A program made the translations under genes and the position numbers. A stretch of 63,797 bases of DNA, filler included, from Guillardia theta CCMP2712 (Eukaryota > Protista > Cryptophyta): assembly GCF_000315625.1 (NCBI RefSeq). It is 6 parts of 6 records of this genome, joined end to end, with 100 filler letters (N's around TTAATTAATTAA, not from the genome) between each part and the next. Parts side by side here need not be neighbours in the genome. Positions count along the whole stretch, not along the records: positions 1 to 13,354 come from NW_005434422.1; 5 more parts are not named here. One strand, given 5' to 3'. The notes beneath the pieces are model-generated. The model worked only from the letters and a program-made list of their open reading frames with translations, had not been told where the DNA came from and made no database searches. Shown one piece after another: positions 1 through 13,354 of this stretch; positions within the stretch are counted from its first letter, which is position 1; every line of letters starts with the position of its first letter.

Positions 1-2115
1 GTGTCACGTGACCGGTCAGGTGAGCCTGTAGCCGGGTCACGGACCCTGTCAGCCGGCTGACATGTCACGGGCCTGCTGACACGGTCCGCTGACCGGTCAC
101 GGCCGCCCGGAGAGATCAGGCCCCCGGCCAATCTCCGGACACTTAGCCTCCTGGCGGGCCTCCAGGGGGTCTGAGGCGGGGCTGAAGGCTGCAGTCGGTC
201 TACTGACGGGCCCGGCCGGCAGGATCCGTCGAGAAACAGGGGGGTCAAGGGAGGTTTTCTTCCCCCTGGGAGAAATGTCCTATGGGTTTTTGGATCTGCG
301 ATATAAAAAAGTCTTGTCTCGGTCACTGATGTGTCACGTGACCGGTCAGGTGAGCCTGTCAGCCGGGTCACGGACCCTGTCAGCCGGGTGACATGTCACG
401 GGCCTGCTGACACGGTCCGCTGACCGGTCACGGCCGCCCGGAGAGATCAGGCCCCCGGCCAATCTCCGGACACTTAGCCTCCTGGCGGGCCTCCAGGGGG
501 TCTGAGGCGGGGCTGAAGGCTGCAGTCGGTCTACTGACGGGCCCGGCCGGCAGGATCCGTCGAGAAACAGGGGGGTCAAGGGAGGATTTCTTCCCCTGGG
601 AGAAATGTCCTATGGGTTTTTGGATCTGCGATATAAAAAAGTCTTGTCTCGGTCACGTGATGTGTCACGTGACCGGTCAGGTGAGCCTGTCAGCCGGGTC
701 ACGGCCCCTGTCAGCCGGCTGACATGTCACGGGCCTGCTGACACGGTCCGCTGACCGGTCACGGCCGCCCGGAGAGATCAGGCCCCCGGCCAATCTCCGG
801 ACACTTAGCCTCCTGGCGGGCCTCCAGGGGGTCTGAGGCGGGGCTGAAGGCTGCAGTCGGTCTACTGACGGGCCCGGCCGGCAGGATCCGTCGAGAAACA
901 GGGGGGTCAAGGGAGGTTTTCTTCCCCCTGGGAGAAATGTCCTATGGGTTTTTGGATCTGCGATATAAAAAAGTCTTGTCTCGGTCACGTGATGTGTCAC
1001 GTGACCGGTCAGGTGAGCCTGTCAGCCGGGTCACGGCCCCTGTCAGCCGGCTGACATGTCACGGGCCTGCTGACACGGTCCGCTGACCGGTCACGGCCGC
1101 CCGGAGAGATCAGGCCCCCGGCCAATCTCCGGACACTTAGCCTCCTGGCGGGCCTCCAGGGGGTCTGAGGCGGGGCTGAAGGCTGCAGTCGGTCTACTGA
1201 CGGGCCCGGCCGGCAGGATCCGTCGAGAAACAGGGGGGTCAAGGGAGGTTTTCTTCCCCCTGGGAGAAATGTCCTATGGGTTTTTGGATCTGCGATATAA
1301 AAAAGTCTTGTCTCGGTCACGTGATGTGTCACGTGACCGGTCAGGTGAGCCTGTCAGCCGGGTCACGGACCCTGTCAGCCGGCTGACATGTCACGGGCCT
1401 GCTGACACGGTCCGCTGACCGGTCACGGCCGCCCGGAGAGATCAAGCCCCCGGCCAATCTCCGGACACTTAGCCTCCTGGCGGGCCTCCAGGGGTCTGAG
1501 GCGGGGCTGAAGGCTGCAGTCGGTCTACTGACGGGCCCGGCCGGCAGGATCCGTCGAGAAACAGGGGGGTCAAGGGAGGTTTTCTTCCCCCTGGGAGAAA
1601 TGTCCTATGGGTTTTTGGATCTGCGATATAAAAAAGTCTTGTCTCGGTCACGTGATGTGTCACGTGACCGGTCAGGTGAGCCTGTCAGCCGGGTCACGGC
1701 CCCTGTCAGCCGGCTGACATGTCACGGGCCTGCTGACACGGTCCGCTGACCGGTCACGGCCGCCCGGAGAGATCAGGCCCCCGGCCAATCTCCGGACACT
1801 TAGCCTCCTGGCGGGCCTCCAGGGGGTCTGAGGCGGGGCTGAAGGCTGCAGTCGGTCTACTGACCGGCCCGGCCGGCAGGATCCGTCGAGAAACAGGGGG
1901 GTCAAGGGAGGTTTTCTTCCCCCTGGGAGAAATGTCCTATGGGTTTTTGGATCTGCGATATAAAAAAGTCTTGTCTCGGTCACGTGATGTGTCACGTGAC
2001 CGGTCAGGTGAGCCTGTCAGCCGGGTCACGGCCCCTGTCAGCCGGCTGACATGTCACGGGCCTGCTGACACGGTCCGCTGACCGGTCACGGCCGCCCGGA
2101 GAGATCAGGCCCCCG
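1..2115. repeat. 332-bp GC-rich tandem satellite, array 1 (~6.4 units)
   Basis: Near-identical units recur every 332 bp (six-frame ORF copies at 677 and 1009); the array stops abruptly at ...caggcccccg (2115). Confidence 0.98.
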
Positions 2116-4534
2116 CATTCCGTTCCAATTCCCTTCTGGATTTTTTCACGTTTCGAAAGGGGTTCTTATTCTCAGATATTTTGATTTCACGGTTCTGAAA
2201 TTTTGTACTGCGATTGAAAAAGGTTCTGAAATATTATTGTCTGACGAAAAGAATCCTTTTCGCACAATTTTGGGCCATCTCCCCGCTCAAGCCCACCGTA
2301 ATTCCCCGGCGCGCGCCGTGCCTGTGAAAATTTTTGCAATGGTCATGCTTCAGAGAAGCACGAATGAGGGTTCCATCTCTTGCAAACAACATGTTTCTAT
2401 GCCATGGTTGCTTTTCTGAGAATGGTTTTGATCAAGGTTAGCATATTCCAAATCAGTATTTGATGCATGGTGTAGGTTTGTCTATGAAATCGGTGTATAC
2501 AGAAGTGATTTGATGTTGGTTGTTCAATTTTGCCACTTATTGCTCCTTGCGATGATGGGGCAAAATCGTTATTATTCTAGCGTCATTACTCATGCACAAT
2601 TATGGAGTGTGTTGGATGTGAATGTATTTGAGTCGAGCCAGTGACTTGTCAACCTGTTCTCATGTCCACCAACAACTTGTAAATCAACAAGATGTAAATC
2701 CTCGGTGAGCCTTGATTGCTGCAAGATTTCAAAGACTCGAATACATTCCTAGCACAGTATTTCAGCTTGAGAGTTTTTCTTCAGAGCAGGCTGTCTGATG
2801 CACTATGTAGAAGGGAGAAAACTTTTCGCAGTGATTAACAGCAAAGAATTCAAGCCAGATGCGTTTTCAATTAGGAGAGCAGTGCTGATGCATTGCTCTG
2901 AGGCTGTCAAATTTGTTACGGTGCAGATGAATTCCTTGTAAACTTTCAATTGCACAAATTTTCAGATGAAGATGTTCCGTGAGTAGAGTTGAGATCATGT
3001 ATGAAGTCTCGATGAAATGAATATGAGTTTTGACAAAATCAGGCTTTTCGAACATGTGTTCAAATTTCCAGGGCCTCAGTGTTGGCAAGGCTTCGACATG
3101 ATGCCAAACATTCATATGTCTTTAGGGACACACATGTGCGGCATATGCGTGCTTGTACTAAAAGACTTGAATGTTTCTGTTGAAAGTCGATCGACAGAGG
3201 AGAAACCTTGCCACCGCGCATGCTAGTTCGAATCTTTTATTGAAAATAGACATGTTCATTACTGGACTGCATCTACACGATCAATAAGCCCATCCTTCCT
3301 TGTGCATTTGAGCTCCGATGTTCAAGTATGTGATCATTGCCACCTGGGTGACACCGCACAAAATACAAGAAGTTTTCTTGCTTCTTGGATATCAGTCTTG
3401 GATTGCTTCAAAATAGGGCGGAAGGGACGGGCAGTAGATAATTGAATGACCTCAAAATCATCTTTTGTTGCTACATTGAGTACATGCATGCCTGTTAACA
3501 AACAGACGAGGCGAATGCTCACTTGCAGCTTTGCGATTCGACAAATAAGGGCATCAGTGCATGGGCCAGGATATCCACAATGACACGGCAACAATCCAAG
3601 AACTTTGGATTGACAAACAGTCTAGACATGTAGTCATGCATTAGAATCAGTAACTTGCCTGAACACAGCTTGTTGATGCTACTGCTCTCCTTCTGATAAT
3701 AACATTGGTGGCTGTCATTCAAGTCTAAAGTTGATGGGCCATATCCCCCAGTTCCTCTGACAGCAGTTGACTTAGATATTGGCTGAGATGAATCAAGATC
3801 TCGCTAACGATCAACATGTTCCCTGACTTCGAAAAGCGTTGACATACATCGAAGTTTGAATCCATTGCACTTGGTTCATCACCACAACAGAGCTGCATTC
3901 ATGCAAGGTAGGTTCTTTTCAAGACCCTTCTTGTATCTATGCAACAATACAATATGATTCGAAGCATACACACATGATAATTCGATTGCAACACGTCCTC
4001 ATGGTATCATGGCCATCGCTCCTTGTCGTGGCTCAAGCAGAAGGCGTGTGGGGTTGAGGAATTGACCCACCCCTACCTTCCGATTTCCATCTACTCAGGC
4101 TTTTTCAAAGGTAGGGGGTACTGGCTTTGGTCAAAGTAATTTGATTCAAACTTTTCCCTTGCGAGAGGGTCATTGAGCTATGGACCACAGGGGTGGGTGC
4201 TGTTTGACCACTTACCGGTAATCGAATATGATACTTTTCGACGCCAATTCCAGTACGGAGAGCCCATACTTTTAAGATTTCATCCTTCCTCCCTTGAATC
4301 CGATCCACCCCACCCTGACTCTGACGGAGTGAAACGTACGGGTTCTCTAAACTATCTGAAACCACCCATGCGAACCTCACAGAAAATGAGGGACTTTTGT
4401 GGTACAACCTCATGTATGGGGAGCCCTGAGGACCTCCGTACAAATACCACAACGCTTTGGAATAAGTATTTTAAGGGCAGTACAAACAAAACGCCCTGGT
4501 ACTAAAGATTCCAGAAGGGGATTGGAACGGAATG
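2116..4534. mobile_element. Non-autonomous TIR DNA element 1 (~2.42 kb)
   Basis: Left end CATTCCGTTCCAATTCCCTTCTGGA matches the reverse complement of the right end CATTCCGTTCCAATCCCCTTCTGGA (25 bp, 1 mismatch); AT-rich interior with no long ORF; flanks g|...|g. Confidence 0.85.
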
Positions 4535-5327
4535 GGGCCGAGAGCCTGTGACCATCCAGCGCCGAGCAACTTCCGCCAGCCGGACCACAGAACCCACCCG
4601 GCACCGGGTACCACGTGCCACGACGGTAACTGGCAGCGCCGGCGGATTCCGGGAGCACGGTCAACGGGCGCCACTGCCGAACTTCCGGCGGACTGGAGGC
4701 CGGGCCCCGGCCGCCCGGCCCGGGCCGCCCCCGGGGATCCGGGGCATGGCAAGCACCGTGCCACGGTGTGGCAGTACCGTGTACCGGGCGGCGCCGAGGG
4801 CCTGGCACTGGGTGCCGCCGCCCGCAGTGCCACCGATGGCAGAGAGACCAAGGCGGCTCAGTACCGGAGCAAAGGTTGGCATGCGGAGGCCTGAACTGAG
4901 TTCGGAGTCCCGGTCCGGGACTGAGTCCGCCGGGGCGCCGGCCCCGCCGCGGGTCCGAGTCACCGGGTTCAGGGCCCCGGCGGCGCAGGCCCCCCCGGGG
5001 TCGGCCCGGGCGGCCGGCTGCCACTGGGTGCTGCAGTGCCAGCCTCGGGGTCGCAGGCCGGATGCCTGTCAATGCGGCGGGCCCTGCACTCGGATCGGCC
5101 CGGTCTAGTTTTCGAGATTAGAAGCCTGCCACACTGGGGCAGCCGGGACGTGGGAGTCCGATATGATATCGGATGTCTAATTCATCAGAGTCAAGTGACG
5201 CTCCGATGATTGCTTCCAAGTTCACTGACGGCAAGATCGGACTCGGACCCGAGTCATAGATATCCAGGCTTACTAGAGTCAAAATTTCTTTCCGAAGTCA
5301 TCGAGTCACCCGAGTCCGGCCGCCGGG
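4535..5327. other. GC-rich non-coding CCGG/GGCA/GAGTC island
   Basis: Dense CCGG, GTACCG, TGCC and GAGTC motifs; overlapping Pro/Gly/Arg-rich ORFs on both strands with no recognisable domain. Confidence 0.6.
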
Positions 5328-6451
5328 CATTCCATTGGGTTCTCAACTGGATTTTATTCCGTCGACGGTCTCGGCGGGGTCTTTTTCTACCTGGATTTTT
5401 CTGAATGAATAGGTTTTGGATTTCAAAGCGAAAATTTTCCTTGAAATGTTTTACTTCTGTCAAACCACGCCATTTCAAATTGTGGGATCCTGCCAGCACC
5501 GTGCCATTTCTGGAATTTTTAAACGTTGTACAGAATGTACCAATGTTGTACACGGTGTCAGTTTGGGAGACTCACGTTCAAGCAGATCGCGCCCTGTGGG
5601 CACCATGTTGTGAGATAAATACATCATTGTGATGACAAGAACATCTTTTGATGCCAAATTTGACCAGATTTGAATGTATCATGTGGGAAAACGACTGCAT
5701 TTCCTTTAAGCAGAGTGTTTTGAGGATGATCATCGGATGCATATCATGTTGCAATAAGAATTTTGTGGAAAGGAAATATTTGAATCTCAGTTCGTTGAGT
5801 TGCGTGTAAATGCAAATATGCTTTGAAGCATTGTGAGCATAGTTGTAACTGTGCATTGACTTGTAATAGTGTAAGGTATGCATTCAAATTTGCATGCTCA
5901 CGCTATCCAATAATTGTGTGACTTTCCTTGTCATACTTGCACTGAAACACCAGCTGTTTTCACACTTTCAGAAGGGAAACATGAAAGGAATCGATCAGAG
6001 AGGCAACCTTCGAAGACATAAAGGAAATGCTATTCTCCTTATTGCGATGACGGCCTAGCTTCCTGTACCAGAATGCTTCGTCGGTTGTATATGAAACATA
6101 TTTCAAGAGACTTGCTGGTGCTTTGCCATGATTGCATTTTTTTAGGCTTCTCCCAACGCATTCCACAACAGTTTGAGTCTTGTGAAATGCTCTCAACAGC
6201 CAGTGGCATGGCGATTGTAACATGTCATTGGAGTTTGAGAGGCTGGGGGAGGAGAGATGAGGGGAGAGGGGAGGGGGGAAGGAGAGGGGATAGGAGGGGT
6301 TGGAAGGAAAAGCGAAGCCTGGGAAGTATTGATATGCTGATCGCGAGAGACTGGGAGATGCCAGAGGAGAGACGGTTTACTCAAGACCACTAGCGAGGAA
6401 GGGAGGAGGGCTTGGAGGAGAGGCGAGGAAGGAGAAAGCTTCGGGTAGAGA
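5328..6451. mobile_element. Probable left part of a third CATTCC-terminated element (runs into an assembly gap)
   Basis: Sharp GC-to-AT switch at ccggg|CATTCCATTGGG; TGCA/CATG-rich interior like elements 1 and 2; right end not visible. Confidence 0.55.
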
Positions 6452-6586
6452 NNNNNNNNNNNNNNNNNNNNNNNNNNNNNNNNNNNNNNNNNNNNNNNNN
6501 NNNNNNNNNNNNNNNNNNNNNNNNNNNNNNNNNNNNNNNNNNNNNNNNNNNGGGGGCCGCGCGGTTGGGGCGATACTAGCCAGACC

Positions 6587-7637
6587 TACTGACACGGTCG
6601 CTGACGTGTACCGCCGCCCGTAGAGATCAGGCCCCCGGCCAATCTCCGGACACTTAGCCTCCTGGCGGGCCTCCAGGGGGTCTGAGGCGGGGCTGAAGGC
6701 TGCAGTCGGTCTACTGACGGGCCCGGCCGGCAGGAGTCGTCGAGAAACAGGGGGGTCAAGGGAGGTTTTCTTCCCCCTGGGAGAAATGTCCTATGGGTTT
6801 TTGGATCTGCGATATAAAAAAGTCTTGTCTCGGTCACGTGATGTGTCACGTGACCGGTCAGGTGAGCCTGTCAGCCGGGTCACGGCCCCTGTCAGCCGGC
6901 TGACATGTCACGGGCCTGCTGACACGGTCCGCTGACCGGTCACGGCCGCCCGGAGAGATCAGGCCCCCGGCCAATCTCCGGACACTTAGCCTCCTGGCGG
7001 GCCTCCAGGGGGTCTGAGGCGGGGCTGAAGGCTGCAGTCGGTCTACTGACGGGCCCGGCCGGCAGGATCCGTCGAGAAACAGGGGGGTCAAGGGAGGTTT
7101 TCTTCCCCCTGGGAGAAAGGTCCTATGGGTTTTTGGATCTGCGATATAAAAAAGTCTTGTCTCGGTCACGTGATGTGTCACGTGACCGGTCAGGTGAGCC
7201 TGTCAGCCGGGTCACGGCCCCTGTCAGCCGGCTGACATGTCACGGGCCTGCTGACACGGTCCGCTGACCGGTCACGGCCGCCCGGAGAGATCAGGCCCCC
7301 GGCCAATCTCCGGACACTTAGCCTCCTGGCGGGCCTCCAGGGGGTCTGAGGCGGGGCTGAAGGCTGCAGTCGGTCTACTGACCGGCCCGGCCGGCAGGAT
7401 CCGTCGAGAAACAGGGGGGTCAAGGGAGGTTTTCTTCCCCCTGGGAGAAATGTCCTATGGGTTTTTGGATCTGCGATATAAAAAAGTCTTGTCTCGGTCA
7501 CGTGATGTGTCACGTGACCGGTCAGGTGAGCCTGTCAGCCGGGTCACCGCCCCTGTCAGCCGGCTGACATGTCACGGGCCTGCTGACACGGTCCGCTGAC
7601 CGGTCACGGCCGCCCGGAGAGATCAGGCCCCCGGCCA
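6587..7637. repeat. 332-bp satellite, array 2 (~3.2 units)
   Basis: Same unit; the first ~40 bp after the gap are degenerate; ends at ...cccggcca. Confidence 0.97.
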
Positions 7638-10174
7638 CATGCCGTTCACAAGGCCATATGCAGGCTCTAGCAAAATTGGTCTTTTTTTTTCTCCTTGGGA
7701 AGGGGTTCATATATACACTTCCATTCAGCTACCCCGGTTTTTGCTCTCTTACTGGGGGGTAGTGAGACAGGGATAAAGTAGGGTGGGGTGATTTGAATTA
7801 TACTGGCGTGGTACCCTGTCCCCCGCCTTACTTTTTGAAGCACTTCATTTTAATTGTTTAGTCAGCGCTTCAATCGTACACATCTATGTACGGATGAAGT
7901 GCCTCTGGTACAGTCTGTACTATTCTTTTAAAGTGGTTTCGACAGGCGTCTCGAATCAGCCTCCACCCTAGTGACTTCCTTTGTCTGGAGGGGTAGAGGA
8001 CCGAAAGATTCTCTCATACCCGTGCATTTCACTGTATCACGGTACGTGGGGGTGCTAATGGAAAAGAAGGCATTTCGATTGCCGTTGGAGCTCACCACGC
8101 CAATACCCCCGGTTCCCCTTCATCACCTTTACGAAAGGCGGGGTGGGTAGCTAGCAAAGAATACAAATCTACCCTTTGATTCAAGAGTTTGAAATTGGGA
8201 AATAGGGGGTAGGGTGCTATCTCCACTCTCCTTTCCCCAAATCCCCCCTCCCTGGGCAAGCAAGAGATGGCTGATTGATCCTTCACCCGCATGCAACGAC
8301 AAGTCATCATGGTGAGAGGCTTCGAATCTATTGCTGCTTGAATGTGGATGAGAATTTAATCGTCTAATGTATCCATGTAGATAGACTAAGACCTTTTCTT
8401 AGTCTCTGACTTTGAAAGAAAGTTTTGAATTCCGCTTCTCTTACATGACTGCATGACAGAGAAAGCTGTCTAGGAATGAAGATGTCTTTGGAATACATTG
8501 CAAAAGATGAATACACCTTTTCTGCTCTCTTATTCGTTGTTTCAAGCATGAGAGCCGTATGTACGAGGATTCAGAGAGGAAGTATGGTTTACAATGCTGC
8601 ACCATCAGTTTGCAAATGAGGTGCTTTCATGCACTCCAATCTTGCAAATATGCTAGAAATATTCAAGTATTTGCAGTTCAGATCCTCAAAAGCAACATCT
8701 TCACATTAGTTCTGCTTGAGCATGCATTCAAAATGCTCAAGGATCAACATGCTCCACGTAGCTGTGGCGACATGGAAAGTCTGTTTCAACCACAGGATAA
8801 GAATCCTACAGCAATCAATGTGGCTTACTAGAGCTACAAGCATACATTGTGCATAATTAGGTTTATTTGCAACTTTTTGATGTATCTCTGCTATGCAGGC
8901 ACAACGAAGAAACCAATGTGAGGCTTATTGTGCTGACCATTGCGCATGTATTTGATGCTACTTGCGGTTGTCATTGTAATTAGATTGTTGCAAAGAATGA
9001 TACCTCATGAATGTATAAAGATTTCTGCAATCAGATCACTACCATTTGTGATGTCGATCCCAAGCTTACAGTGAGTCGGAATGGTCTACAGGGGAAGTGA
9101 TGTTTTCATCATCATTCAACCCTTGCATGCATTCTGCATTTATGTGAAATGAAAGAAGATACAGAAATGCTCTTTAGCATGGCCTCGAATGCAAGACTGA
9201 TATCACTTTATTTCACAATAGAACAAATAATACATGTGTGCATACTGTGTTGACGGTTCAAATGTCCGACATCACAGCTAGATGAACGCTCAAAACTAAT
9301 CCCACGCATCAAGAAATCAACACACTCTGCAAATCTCAGAAGTGGAGACTCTCGACAGTGTTCAAGGCTTAAGATGTCTTGATTGCCTCTGGCGGCATCA
9401 GTGTTTACATGCAATCAAACATCCTCACTGCAGTAGGCGAAATGCATGCAGAAATCTTGTGAAACAATCTATGCAATGCTTGATGTCTAATATAACAAGT
9501 GGGCTTGACTAATTACGTGGATCTGCAACATGATGCTATCTCCATCAAACAAATCTTCAAGGCATCGCATGTGGAAAATATGCAATTCAAAAATCATTCA
9601 TCGCAGGGAAGTATCTTATGATTATTCTGCGCTGCCATAAGGTTGGTGTCAAGTCAAAATGACAAGCGATCTCCTGCACTGGATTCAAACCTCATGTTTT
9701 CATCATCTTGTTCTTCATAATAACCTTTTGAACCATGGATCTCACAACGCCATTGCTGCACACTCTGTTGTCACCGAACGCATCACCACGAACCTAGCGG
9801 TCTCAGGTCTCAAACTGTGCGGACTAGAGAGCTTCAAACCTAACAAAGCCTTGCATGCTGAGATCTGATGCTGGCTACAGCAGCGGATGGTCTTACAGCG
9901 GCATCGTTGGAGGAGCAGCTTTGGTGCTACGTGCCGGCGTGTAGGGGAGACATGAGTCGGGCGTGTACGATGTTGAAAACATTTCAACCCTCTGAAATGA
10001 AAGTTAAAATACATGTAAAGGCCTAGCAGAAATGATAACTAAACTGCACTGGTACTCTTTGGAGGTATCTCTTGCTGCCGTTGAAAACTTGTTTGAATTC
10101 ACACGCCACCCCAAAAAAAACTTTCTCGAAAAGAAGAGTGGAAATTAACGAAAGGGCTAAAAGTGAACGGCATG
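7638..10174. mobile_element. Non-autonomous TIR DNA element 2 (~2.54 kb) inserted inside a satellite unit
   Basis: Perfect 12-bp TIR CATGCCGTTCAC (7638) ... GTGAACGGCATG (10163-10174); the satellite breaks at ggcca| and resumes at |aatctcc. Confidence 0.9.
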
Positions 10175-10943
10175 AATCTCCGGACACTTAGCCTCCTGGC
10201 GGGCCTCCAGGGGGTCTGAGGCGGGGCTGAAGGCTGCAGTCGGTCTACTGACCGGCCCGGCCGGCAGGATCCGTCGAGAAACAGGGGGGTCAAGGGAGGT
10301 TTTCTTCCCCCTGGGAGAAATGTCCTATGGGTTTTTGGATCTGCGATATAAAAAAGTCTTGTCTCGGTCACGTGATGTGTCACGTGACCGGTCAGGTGAG
10401 CCTGTCAGCCGGGTCACGGCCCCTGTCAGCCGGCTGACATGTCACGGGCCTGCTGACACGGTCCGCTGACCGGTCACGGCCGCCCGGAGAGATCAGGCCC
10501 CCGGCCAATCTCCGGACACTTAGCCTCCTGGCGGGCCTCCAGGGGGTCTGAGGCGGGGCTGAAGGCTGCAGTCGGTCTACTGACCGGCCCGGCCGGCAGG
10601 ATCCGTCGAGAAACAGGGGGGTCAAGGGAGGTTTTCTTCCCCCTGGGAGAAATGTCCTATGGGTTTTTGGATCTGCGATATAAAAAAGTCTTGTCTCGGT
10701 CACGTGATGTGTCACGTGACCGGTCAGGTGAGCCTGTCAGCCGGGTCACGGCCCCTGTCAGCCGGCTGACATGTCACGGGCCTGCTGACACGGTCCGCTG
10801 ACCGGTCACGGCCGCCCGGAGAGATCAGGCCCCCGGCCAATCTCCGGACACTTAGCCTCCTGGGGGGTCTGAGCGGGGCTGAAGCTGCAGTCGGTCTACT
10901 GACCGGCCCGGCCGGCAGGATCCGTCGAGAAACAGGGGGTCAA
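10175..10943. repeat. 332-bp satellite, array 3 (~2.3 units)
   Basis: Same unit; the last copy has small deletions near 10861-10885. Confidence 0.97.
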
Positions 10944-11417
10944 TAGTTGAAAGTATGTTTGAATCGGGGACCGTGTCGAGCAGTTTTAGGTTTACAAGTA
11001 TTCTTGCTTCCTCCAAACAACAAGGTTTCAAACATTAAAACTATTTTTGACCATGACACGCTTTTACACGCCTGGGGGGTGCATATAGTACAATCGAATC
11101 GGCTTGCCCTACCCTTTCCCCCATTGCTCTGCATCCGGGAAGCAACGGGGAGAGAGGGGGGCAGGGGGGAGGGAGGGAGCAGGGAGGAAGGGAGGGGAGC
11201 AGGGGGGAGGGAGGGAGGGAGAAGAGCATTAAAGGANNNNNNNNNNNNNNNNNNNNNNNNNNNNNNNNNNNNNNNNNNNNNNNNNNNNNNNNNNNNNNNN
11301 NNNNNNNNNNNNNNNNNNNNNNNNNNNNNNNNNNNNNNNNNNNNNNNNNNNNNNNNNNNNNNNNNNNNNNNNNNNNNNNNNNNNNNNNNNNNNNNNNNNN
11401 NNNNNNNNNNNNNNNNN

Positions 11418-11751
11418 CTTGATTTGAAAACAAAAATACTTATTGGCTAGATTTACTACACTCGTCAATGGCTGACACTAATAAGATTTCATGAGCGTGT
11501 ATCGAAATATACGAATAACCCTACCCCCTCCATATCAGACAAACATACCGGTACACAGGGTAGAGAGCAGCCAAGAGGCGTGTAAGCCGGAACTCAAATG
11601 CTTAAAACAAATATAAAAGAGTACTGAGTGGTACAAATCATTCTGGTACAAAATTGACTAAAACTGTATGCTTATGATCAAATTAACAGGTACAAGTGTT
11701 TGTTAAAAGGATATTAATTTATAATTGGGCATTAGTAAATGCCATGGAATG
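11418..11751. mobile_element. Probable right end of a fourth GGAATG-terminated element
   Basis: AT-rich DNA ends at gccatGGAATG|caggcccccgg where the satellite resumes; its reverse complement begins CATTCCAT, as at 5328. Confidence 0.55.
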
Positions 11752-13310
11752 CAGGCCCCCGGCCAAATCTCCGGACACTTAGCCTCCTGGCGGGCCTCCA
11801 GGGGGTCTGAGGCGGGGCTGAAGGCTGCAGTCGGTCTACTGACGGGCCCGGCCGGCAGGATCCGTCGAGAAACAGGGGGGTCAAGGGAGGTTTTCTTCCC
11901 CTGGGAGAAATGTCCTATGGGTTTTTGGATCTGCGATATAAAAAAGTCTTGTCTCGGTCACGTGATGTGTCACGTGACCGGTCAGGTGAGCCTGTCAGCC
12001 GGGTCACGGCCCCTGTCAGCCGGCTGACATGTCACGGGCCTGCTGACACGGTCCGCTGACCGGTCACGGCCGCCCGGAGAGATCAGGCCCCCGGCCAATC
12101 TCCGGACACTTAGCCTCCTGGCGGGCCTCCAGGGGGTCTGAGGCGGGGCTGAAGGCTGCAGTCGGTCTACTGACGGGCCCGGCCGGCAGGATCCGTCGAG
12201 AAACAGGGGGGTCAAGGGAGGTTTTCTTCCCCCTGGGAGAAATGTCCTATGGGTTTTTGGATCTGCGATATAAAAAAGTCTTGTCTCGGTCACGTGATGT
12301 GTCACGTGACCGGTCAGGTGAGCCTGTCAGCCGGGTCACGGCCCCTGTCAGCCGGCTGACATGTCACGGGCCTGCTGACACGGTCCGCTGACCGGTCACG
12401 GCCGCCCGGAGAGATCAGGCCCCCGGCCAATCTCCGGACACTTAGCCTCCTGGCGGGCCTCCAGGGGGTCTGAGGCGGGGCTGAAGGCTGCAGTCGCTCT
12501 ACTGACGGGCCCGGCCGGCAGGATCCGTCGAGAAACAGGGGGGTCAAGGGAGGTTTTCTTCCCCCTGGGAGAAATGTCCTATGGGTTTTTGGATCTGCGA
12601 TATAAAAAAGTCTTGTCTCGGTCACGTGATGTGTCACGTGACCGGTCAGGTGAGCCTGTCAGCCGGGTCACGGCCCCTGTCAGCCGGCTGACATGTCACG
12701 GGCCTGCTGACACGGTCCGCTGACCGGTCACGGCCGCCCGGAGAGATCAGGCCCCCGGCCAATCTCCGGACACTTAGCCTCCTGGCGGGCCTCCAGGGGG
12801 TCTGAGGCGGGGCTGAAGGCTGCAGTCGCTCTACTGACGGGCCCGGCCGGCAGGATCCGTCGAGAAACAGGGGGGTCAAGGGAGGTTTTCTTCCCCCTGG
12901 GAGAAATGTCCTATGGGTTTTTGGATCTGCGATATAAAAAAGTCTTGTCTCGGTCACGTGATGTGTCACGTGACCGGTCAGGTGAGCCTGTCAGCCGGGT
13001 CACGGCCCCTGTCAGCCGGCTGACATGTCACGGGCCTGCTGACACGGTCCGCTGACCGGTCACGGCCGCCCGGAGAGATCAGGCCCCCGGCCAATCTCCG
13101 GACACTTAGCCTCCTGGCGGGCCTCCAGGGGGTCTGAGTCTGAGGCGGGGCTGAAGGCTGCAGTCGGTCTACTGACCGGCCCGGCCGGCAGGATCCGTCG
13201 AGAAACAGGGGGGTCAAGGGAGGTTTTCTTCCCCCTGGGAGAAATGTCCTATGGGTTTTTGGATCTGCGATATAAAAAAGTCTTGTCTCGGTCACGTGAT
13301 GTGTCACGTG
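11752..13310. repeat. 332-bp satellite, array 4 (~4.7 units)
   Basis: ORF copies at 11982, 12314, 12646 and 12978 are spaced 332 bp apart. Confidence 0.98.
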
Positions 13311-13354
13311 GAATCTGAAATAGGGTTCGAATTCAGCTTTATAATTCTCATTTT

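Follow-up and report, generated by a model that had tools for sequence, protein, structure and literature searches.

The RAG1–RAG2 recombinase, responsible for the assembly of antibody genes, has a transposon as its ancestor, and the origin of its partnership with chromatin reading is an open question. The related Transib and RAG1-like (RAGL) transposons possess terminal inverted repeats (TIRs) that begin with CA, bipartite and asymmetric ends, and a convergent second gene; the RAGL partner is a RAG2-like kelch propeller protein, and RAG2 itself carries a histone-reading PHD finger. RepeatMasker classes Transib under CMC (CACTA/EnSpm, Mirage and Chapaev elements), and the length of the target-site duplication (TSD) varies within Transib (bioRxiv 10.64898/2026.08.26.747230). 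Plant CACTA elements likewise encode a second protein. Here, we describe a stretch of DNA from the cryptophyte Guillardia theta CCMP2712 in which comparable elements interrupt a satellite. The window, meaning the whole stretch that was analyzed, comprises 63,797 nucleotides with filler included; its positions 1 to 13,354 come from NW_005434422.1, and the region examined corresponds to contig C252:42545-55954 of the 87.1 Mb, 669-contig assembly. There, the major 332-bp satellite of G. theta is broken up between positions 2116 and 11751, and we consider it quite probable that the interruptions are four non-autonomous or truncated members of an unannotated group of cut-and-paste transposons, the autonomous copies of which encode a transposase with a RAG1 fold and a partner with a bromo-adjacent homology (BAH) domain.

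The interruptions stand out by composition, with ~40% GC against ~62–65% in the satellite arrays, and no open reading frame (ORF) with homologues was found in them. A first-pass annotation made from the window's sequence had noted two complete elements and two single termini joined by a CAT(T/G)CC end motif, and all four proved genuine and multi-copy. E1 and E2 are young, multi-copy, non-coding TIR elements. The E1 TIR is imperfect and ~30 bp long, starting with CATTCCGTTCC; the genome holds at least four full-length and several partial E1 copies at 97–98% identity, and at least 13 near-full E2 copies at 96–99% identity. The similarity breaks off in every copy precisely at CATTCC.../...GGAATG or CATGCC.../...GGCATG. 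A third family, E3, with at least 14 copies that each begin with CATTCCATTGGG, accounts for the terminus at 5328, which is its left end; other E3 copies reach at least 2.9 kb, while the one in the window is cut after 1124 bp and followed by degenerate satellite, so that the two sides of the first assembly gap are not continuous. The terminus at 11751 derives from a fourth family, E4, of which it forms the right end; E4 returned 28 matches at 96–100% identity, among them a 5028-bp autonomous copy. To the left of the second gap, positions 10944–11236 match an internal part of a non-autonomous E4 copy of 2618 bp (L052:5526-8143), and in other E4 copies the counterpart of this segment sits ~180 bp upstream of the last 334 bp. 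The gap of 181 N is thus consistent with continuity inside one 5'-truncated element, E4n, the left junction of which near 10944 is a breakpoint rather than a terminus. A further family, E5, has at least 16 full-length copies in the genome.

Two observations on the arrangement of these copies are recorded here. On contig C3 (250079-255610; locus L014), an E2 copy with mutated tips (GATGCC... ...GGCCTA) sits between the arms of an inverted repeat formed by host DNA, in a spacer of ~1 kb; the arms (327-958 and 4535-5170, ~630 bp) are 94–100% complementary. An alternative reading, in which 2116–11751 would be a single composite insertion flanked on each side by a 10-bp TSD (CAGGCCCCCG), was not adopted, since the interior contains satellite arrays and the ends derive from different families.

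That the transposase would be encoded elsewhere had been anticipated, and autonomous copies sharing the end types of the window's elements were indeed recovered. Weak end matches led to autonomous copies of 5103 bp with E1-type ends and of 4932 bp with E2-type ends (located in the table); the autonomous E4 copy lies at L055:1089-6116 and has a 25-bp TIR, and a further autonomous lineage, with ends CATTCTGGGG, is represented by L056:452-5384. Each autonomous copy harbors two convergent ORFs, of 880–1035 and 380–415 amino acids, that are homologous across lineages at 21–30% identity. At least 20 matches to the large ORF in the genome retain frames above 750 amino acids with no internal stops, at 25–55% identity to the query, and in most of them the small ORF is adjacent and convergent. 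The transposase copies on contigs C17 and C56 are 100% identical over the aligned residues. Adjoining the autonomous E2 copy on C17, on the minus strand of L026:5351-8887, is a 1178-amino acid ORF with a reverse-transcriptase-like FADD motif; this suggests a non-LTR retrotransposon, with the autonomous E2 beside or inside it.

All members of the group end in CAT...ATG, with the lineage termini CATKCCRTT, CATTCTGGGG and CATAGCGTTG; the recombination signals of Transib and RAG systems differ in carrying a CAC heptamer (CACAGTG or CACAATG-like). The two ends of an element diverge past the first 12–25 bp, and a non-autonomous family shares each of its end types with its autonomous partner, which is the pattern expected for mobilization in trans. 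A motif close to TTTTCGnnnGGGGTCTT recurs in all lineages 35–45 bp from the tip, at one end only (for instance at window positions 2149-2167, L055:1125-1145 and L026:495-511). This one-sided subterminal motif suggests a bipartite, asymmetric organization of the ends, comparable to that of recombination signal sequences; a role as a promoter element is equally conceivable.

With the large protein as query, an exhaustive HMMER pass over 1.84 billion representatives retrieved only 29 relatives; the ones examined individually were G. theta hypothetical proteins, a Hanusia phi EukProt entry, which is presumably transcriptome-derived, and metagenome proteins. A language-model search pointed to RAG1 clusters. 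We modeled the protein with AlphaFold from 14 sequences, and the predicted local distance difference test (pLDDT) score was mostly above 80 across residues ~460–985. In a Foldseek search of the PDB with this model, the top 49 matches were all RAG1, HzTransib or BbRAGL (best E 7.9e-11). VIA-align placed the model closest to HzTransib (6pqx_A; Z 19.3, 418 aligned residues, root mean square deviation 4.0), followed by the RAG1 core (Z 18–19) and amphioxus RAG1L (17.6), with lower scores for the P element (11.4), ISCth4 (8.9) and Hermes (7.6). The matches to HzTransib and the RAG1 core cover model residues ~420–1035, and the likeness to the Transib, RAGL and RAG1 core fold, which comprises pre-RNase H, RNase H, Zn-binding and C-terminal domains, amounts to Z 18–19 over ~430 residues.

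Residues D518, D633, E952, C654/C657, C781/H784 and H921/H927 are invariant; in the model, D518 lies in a β strand, D633 just past a strand, and E952 in a helix. The RAG1 residues set against them are D600, D708, C727/C730, H937/H942 and E962. The acidic triad and the Cys2/His2 pairs appear to parallel RAG1 in order and spacing, the two features compared. We propose that D518, D633 and E952 are the catalytic residues of a DDE transposase. A shape search of the ESM Atlas returned Transposase_21 (CACTA/EnSpm) and DUF1280 clusters, with template modeling (TM) scores of 0.46–0.68 by row, so that CMC proteins are also among the nearest shapes. The joint matches to RAG1/Transib and Transposase_21 shapes indicate that the large protein belongs to the wider CMC/Transib/RAG1 group, and it looks like a previously unrecognized deep branch of that group, equipped with a novel accessory protein. 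P0023, a 2493-amino acid protein with NACHT and LRR domains, contains segments that resemble residues 456–549 of the transposase; it may be a fused or mis-modeled gene or a domesticated fragment.

The small protein returned no Pfam match, and a word-based search found no homologues of it. A model built from eight sequences (pLDDT 70) delineates a domain at residues 82–234. When 48,161 chains were searched exhaustively with VIA, the 19 best matches of the partner all contained BAH domains (Z 11.0–6.6), and the next match scored 5.1; the matched chains include those of ORC1b, PBRM1, EBS, MTA1, DNMT1, AIPP3, TNRC18 and Sir3. Foldseek and the ESM Atlas likewise gave BAH. Structural prediction thereby assigns residues 82–234 of the ~400-amino acid partner to a BAH domain, with no assignment for its C-terminal half, and a RAG2-like kelch β-propeller was absent among the structural matches of the model. 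The gene pair is also present on metagenome contigs, as proteins of 838 with 432 and 868 with 383 amino acids, and a metagenome small ORF aligned to the family profile with an hhalign probability of 100% (E 1.5e-65). On a metagenome contig (L062:2314-2910), an environmental relative is adjoined by a gene with SH3_Tf2-1 and chromodomain Pfam matches, which suggests the tail of a Ty3-type integrase. The system differs from RAGL elements, which pair with a kelch propeller; it resembles the RAG recombinase in that the partner has a chromatin-reader-like domain, which in RAG2 is the PHD finger. Chromodomain retrotransposons that target heterochromatin or centromeres offer another likeness, as they bring their own chromatin-reader module and frequently reside in satellites; they are retroelements with the reader fused to the integrase, whereas here a DNA transposon is accompanied by a separate BAH protein, a putative targeting factor.

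We mapped the junctions onto the 332-bp unit by BLAST tiling of all satellite-bearing loci, with phase 1 at the start of GTGTCACGTG. The three satellite junctions of the window that the first-pass annotation had placed within ~14 bp fall at phases 127 (127|E1), 131 (131|E2|131) and 118 (E4|118), all inside CAGGCCCCCGGCCA, phases 118–131. Seven of the ~17 catalogued junction events lie in this stretch: besides the E1, E2 and E4n events of the window, these are an E4n on C307 (125/126|), an E3 (|126) and an element X1 (131|) on C276, and an element X2 on C105 (|123). An E2 junction on C114 at 131| was not counted, as it may be a copy of the one in the window. When only loci outside the window are tabulated against random expectation, 4 of 12–13 events fall in the hot stretch as delimited in the first-pass annotation, which spans 15 of 332 positions (binomial p ~0.002). 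The remaining events map to phases 10, 21–23, ~70, 96/97, 104, 143, 163–165, 209/210 and 312–314. The hot spot at phases 118–131 is real and recurs at independent loci on C276, C307 and C105. Non-satellite sequences at window positions 13311-13354, L040:130-167, L054:1-490 and L055:6990-7089 adjoin phases 10, 131, 123 and 104, respectively; these four lack a CAT terminus, and nothing in the loci examined matches them.

The hot stretch forms the apical part of a predicted GC-rich hairpin, with an outer stem CCGGAGA/TCTCCGG (phases 108–114 and 133–139), an inner stem GGCC/GGCC and a loop at 124–126. The predicted energy is -9.1 kcal/mol (z -2.8), and one of 200 shuffles folds as well. The TGA duplicated by an element on C114 forms the apex of a separate local hairpin. 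In vitro, hairpin and cruciform targets strongly stimulate transposition by RAG, which also shows hot spots in GC-rich DNA (PMC1618415); by analogy, such a preference would fit a RAG1-fold enzyme at this site.

Together, these data suggest a working model. The transposase would bind the bipartite ends, excise the element and reinsert it with little or no stagger (0–3 bp); supplied by the autonomous copies, it would act in trans on E1, E2, E3 and E4n, with the BAH protein as a putative chromatin-binding cofactor. Within the satellite, the ~15-bp site that is repeatedly hit would correspond to the apical part of an inverted repeat prone to form a hairpin or cruciform. A bolder extension, toward which we remain rather skeptical, is that cryptophytes independently evolved a two-component recombinase in which the RAG1-fold transposase is joined by a convergent BAH reader analogous to RAG2 and its PHD finger, the BAH protein tethering the transposase to nucleosomes or histone marks and, together with DNA structure, generating the hot spot. 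A literature search found no paper linking Guillardia with Transib, CACTA or CMC elements, Repbase being outside that search. In the protist G. theta, the copies are young, the frames look intact and non-autonomous passengers abound, and a very distant RAG1-fold transposase is encoded next to a chromatin-reader-like protein of another kind than RAG2. If the two proteins work together, they would constitute a second, independent partnership of a RAG1-type enzyme with a chromatin reader, directly testable, and a deep CMC/Transib/RAG1 branch missed by sequence searches. The assignment also puts names on numerous repeats and hypothetical proteins in the genome of a reference alga, and the satellite hot spot is a natural target on which site choice by such enzymes can be studied.

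Several findings weigh against this interpretation. At the level of sequence, the large protein has no link to any transposase family: 15 diverse members of the large ORF gave no Pfam match up to E 10, and a profile search against PDB sequences gave none either. The RAG1 domain models (RAG1_RNase_H, ZnC2 and ZnH2) were likewise without a match up to E 10 in the 15 members, which sets the Guillardia elements, like their cryptophyte hosts, apart from Transib and RAG. The same members matched none of Transposase_21, DUF4218 and KDZ, and this, together with termini that are not CACTA and a TSD that is mostly absent, distinguishes them from CMC elements, to which the likeness is one of shape (TM 0.46–0.51). 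The fold assignment rests on the AlphaFold model, and Transposase_21 models match it about as well as RAG1_RNase_H clusters do, so that placement within the group is open. Prediction of a complex between the transposase core and the partner returned a score of 0.00, which is neither support nor counter-evidence for the pairing.

The TSD is a further difficulty, as it is inconsistent across elements and ranges from 0 to 3 bp. Nine full-length E2 copies show none. With the repeats surrounding an insertion as empty-site references, comparison with the satellite gave +1 bp (A) for E2, 0 for a CATAGCGTTG element on C105, -1 for the autonomous E4 on C307 and +3 (TGA) for a CATTCTGGGG element on C114. 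The value was also 0 for the E1 copy that sits in a 21-bp tandem repeat (L004). GTG flanks an autonomous CATTCTGGGG element on both sides, and duplications of 3 bp were thus found at two insertions of this lineage (TGA and GTG), with 0–1 bp elsewhere. The only long TSD-like repeat seen is a 9-bp direct repeat, GCACTGTCC, with 3 extra bases on the left, around an E1 copy on C435 (L007, 810-3220). A palindromic 4-bp TSD (CATG) was rejected because the satellite empty site lacks CATG and E1 ends in CATT/AATG. Transib elements differ in having a 5-bp TSD; CMC elements duplicate 2–4 bp, a range into which only the 3 bp of the CATTCTGGGG lineage falls. Cut-and-paste TIR elements that make no TSD have a precedent in the PIF/Harbinger-like Spy elements (PMC4122938). 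Spy differs in its unrelated transposase and in a target precisely between AAA and TTT, a motif for which there is no equivalent here.

The last counterpoints concern target choice. Elements X1 and X2, which lack CAT ends, account for two of the four independent hot-spot events. Empty sites were also reconstructed for 20 full-length copies elsewhere, and these showed no enrichment of palindromes (mean stem 2.75 versus 2.93 in controls, p 0.59). In view of these two results, the hot spot could reflect structure-directed capture by this transposase, a generally accessible or fragile site, or chromatin-directed targeting in which the BAH partner acts on nucleosomes in phase with the unit (332 = 2 x 166 bp).

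The share of X1 and X2 means that the hot spot may belong to the satellite and not to the transposase. On this account, any mobile DNA is taken up at a fragile or accessible site in satellite DNA or chromatin, such as a cruciform or a nucleosome-free linker within a phased 2 x 166-bp array, and insertions are retained because selection is weak in heterochromatin. We regard this as a real possibility that we nonetheless lean against. It draws on the two junctions of elements without CAT termini (X1 on C276 and X2 on C105), on satellite deletion variants that end near phases 99/100, 137/138, 147/148 and 165, and on the lack of palindrome preference at other insertion sites; yet five junctions of four CAT-type families fall within 14 bp, in different arrays and in both orientations, and X1 and X2 themselves have no family assignment. 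The opposite view, that the transposase recognizes the satellite or GGCC/CCGG-rich DNA and inserts there preferentially as a centromere-associated system, had been favored in the first-pass annotation and now appears improbable. The presence of four different families at phases 118–131, in the window and on C276 and C307, speaks for it. Over all loci examined, 11 of 68 distinct termini adjoin satellite, but several of these 11 loci had been chosen because they bear satellite; with the window copies and the loci chosen for satellite content set aside, the count is ~3 of 57 (~5%). Read depth over the satellite (window positions 1950–2100) is ~11,000x that of the single-copy island in run X14 and two chromatin immunoprecipitation sequencing (ChIP-seq) runs, which corresponds roughly to 11,000 units, ~3.6 Mb or ~4% of the genome, mostly unassembled, a rough amount since summed contig depth is not a copy number. 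At ~4% of the genome, the satellite contains no clear excess of termini over chance, and an uncounted share of insertions is hidden in the unassembled arrays.

Flanking composition does not single out a target either. In the 12 bp beside the termini of 57 non-satellite flanks, GGTG is enriched 4.5x, GGCC 2x and CCGG 1.7x, the latter two in the direction expected for homing; no 4-mer or GC bias survives multiple-testing correction, and flank GC equals the local background (0.59 versus 0.57 in surrounding DNA), which lends no support to the proposed targeting of CCGG/GGCC DNA. Most copies lie in unrelated DNA with no common flank motif, and the same families also enter the satellite at phases 21–23, 70, 96, 143, 163, 210 and 313. 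The elements are not confined to the satellite, and insertion does not appear to be satellite-specific.

The remaining alternative is that mis-joining in a scaffolded draft produced the mosaic of satellite and repeats, with junctions that do not exist in the genome. Two gaps within the region and the heavy collapse of the satellite at the read depth given above would be in keeping with this, as would the flanks of E1: the left flank is satellite and the right flank is the GC island at 4535–5327, which are not contiguous target DNA. The E1 discontinuity, also a point against our interpretation, could stem from ectopic recombination involving E1 copies, or from joining across the 2.4-kb repeat. 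The read evidence at E1 consists of 38-nt reads and short contigs that break at the repeat, and the left junction of E1 with satellite is not displayed explicitly in the read tables. Against an artefact, contigs of two other public runs (run X1, 866 bp; run X14, 851 bp) span the E1 end, the island and E3, so that the junctions at both edges of the island exist outside this assembly; the terminus that had been assigned to a GC-rich island does adjoin single-copy DNA and not satellite. Junctions of these kinds are found again, with base-pair precision, on other contigs, and element ends are exact in all copies. We therefore hold a mis-join to be very unlikely, and retain the reading of four transposon-derived interruptions with the layout given below.

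Table. Satellite arrays, elements, gaps and host DNA in the examined part of the window (window coordinates).
Feature	Position	Strand	Remarks
Satellite array, 6.4 units, 332-bp	1..2115	+	Last phase 127, within hot stretch
E1, non-autonomous, TIR ~30 bp (CATTCCGTTCCAAT...), no homologue-bearing ORF	2116..4534	+	Ends match autonomous L025:1518-6620
GC-rich host DNA, single-copy, from E1 right end to E3 left end	4535..5327	.	Unique in genome; bridged by contigs of runs X1 and X14
E3, first 1124 bp, left terminus CATTCCATTGGG; remainder lost in gap 1	5328..6451	+	
Assembly gap 1	6452..6551	.	Left side E3 interior, right side degenerate satellite
Satellite array, last phase 131	6613..7637	+	6552-6612 is degenerate satellite or unknown
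Hairpin-forming inverted repeat instance, apical part = hot stretch	7608..7637	.	Right half displaced by E2; fold from intact unit 1098-1138
E2, non-autonomous, perfect 12-bp TIR CATGCCGTTCAC	7638..10174	+	At phase 131, <=1 bp (A) duplicated; ends match autonomous L026:452-5383
Satellite array, 2.4 units, small internal deletions	10175..10943	+	
E4n, 5'-truncated non-autonomous E4, holds gap 2 (11237-11417)	10944..11751	+	Right terminus ...GCCATGGAATG adjoins satellite phase 118
Satellite array, 4.7 units, first phase 118	11752..13310	+	

TRF delimits the 332-bp arrays at 1-2115, 6585-7637, 10175-10943 and 11752-13310, with 96–99% match. The satellite unit is composed of 2 x 166 bp and contains many short inverted repeats, and one head-to-head inversion joint, from phase 309 to phase 240, was seen. 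Satellite variants occur at positions 3892-3908 and 5517/5518 of locus L053 (C114:195001-205000) and at 2416/2417 and 2490 of locus L052 (C307:8001-18000); they comprise deletions of phases 100–147 and 138–166, and a 17-bp filler between phases 165 and 99. Several end points of the deletion variants are close to insertion hot spots, and these variants could be excision footprints or ordinary variants of the satellite.

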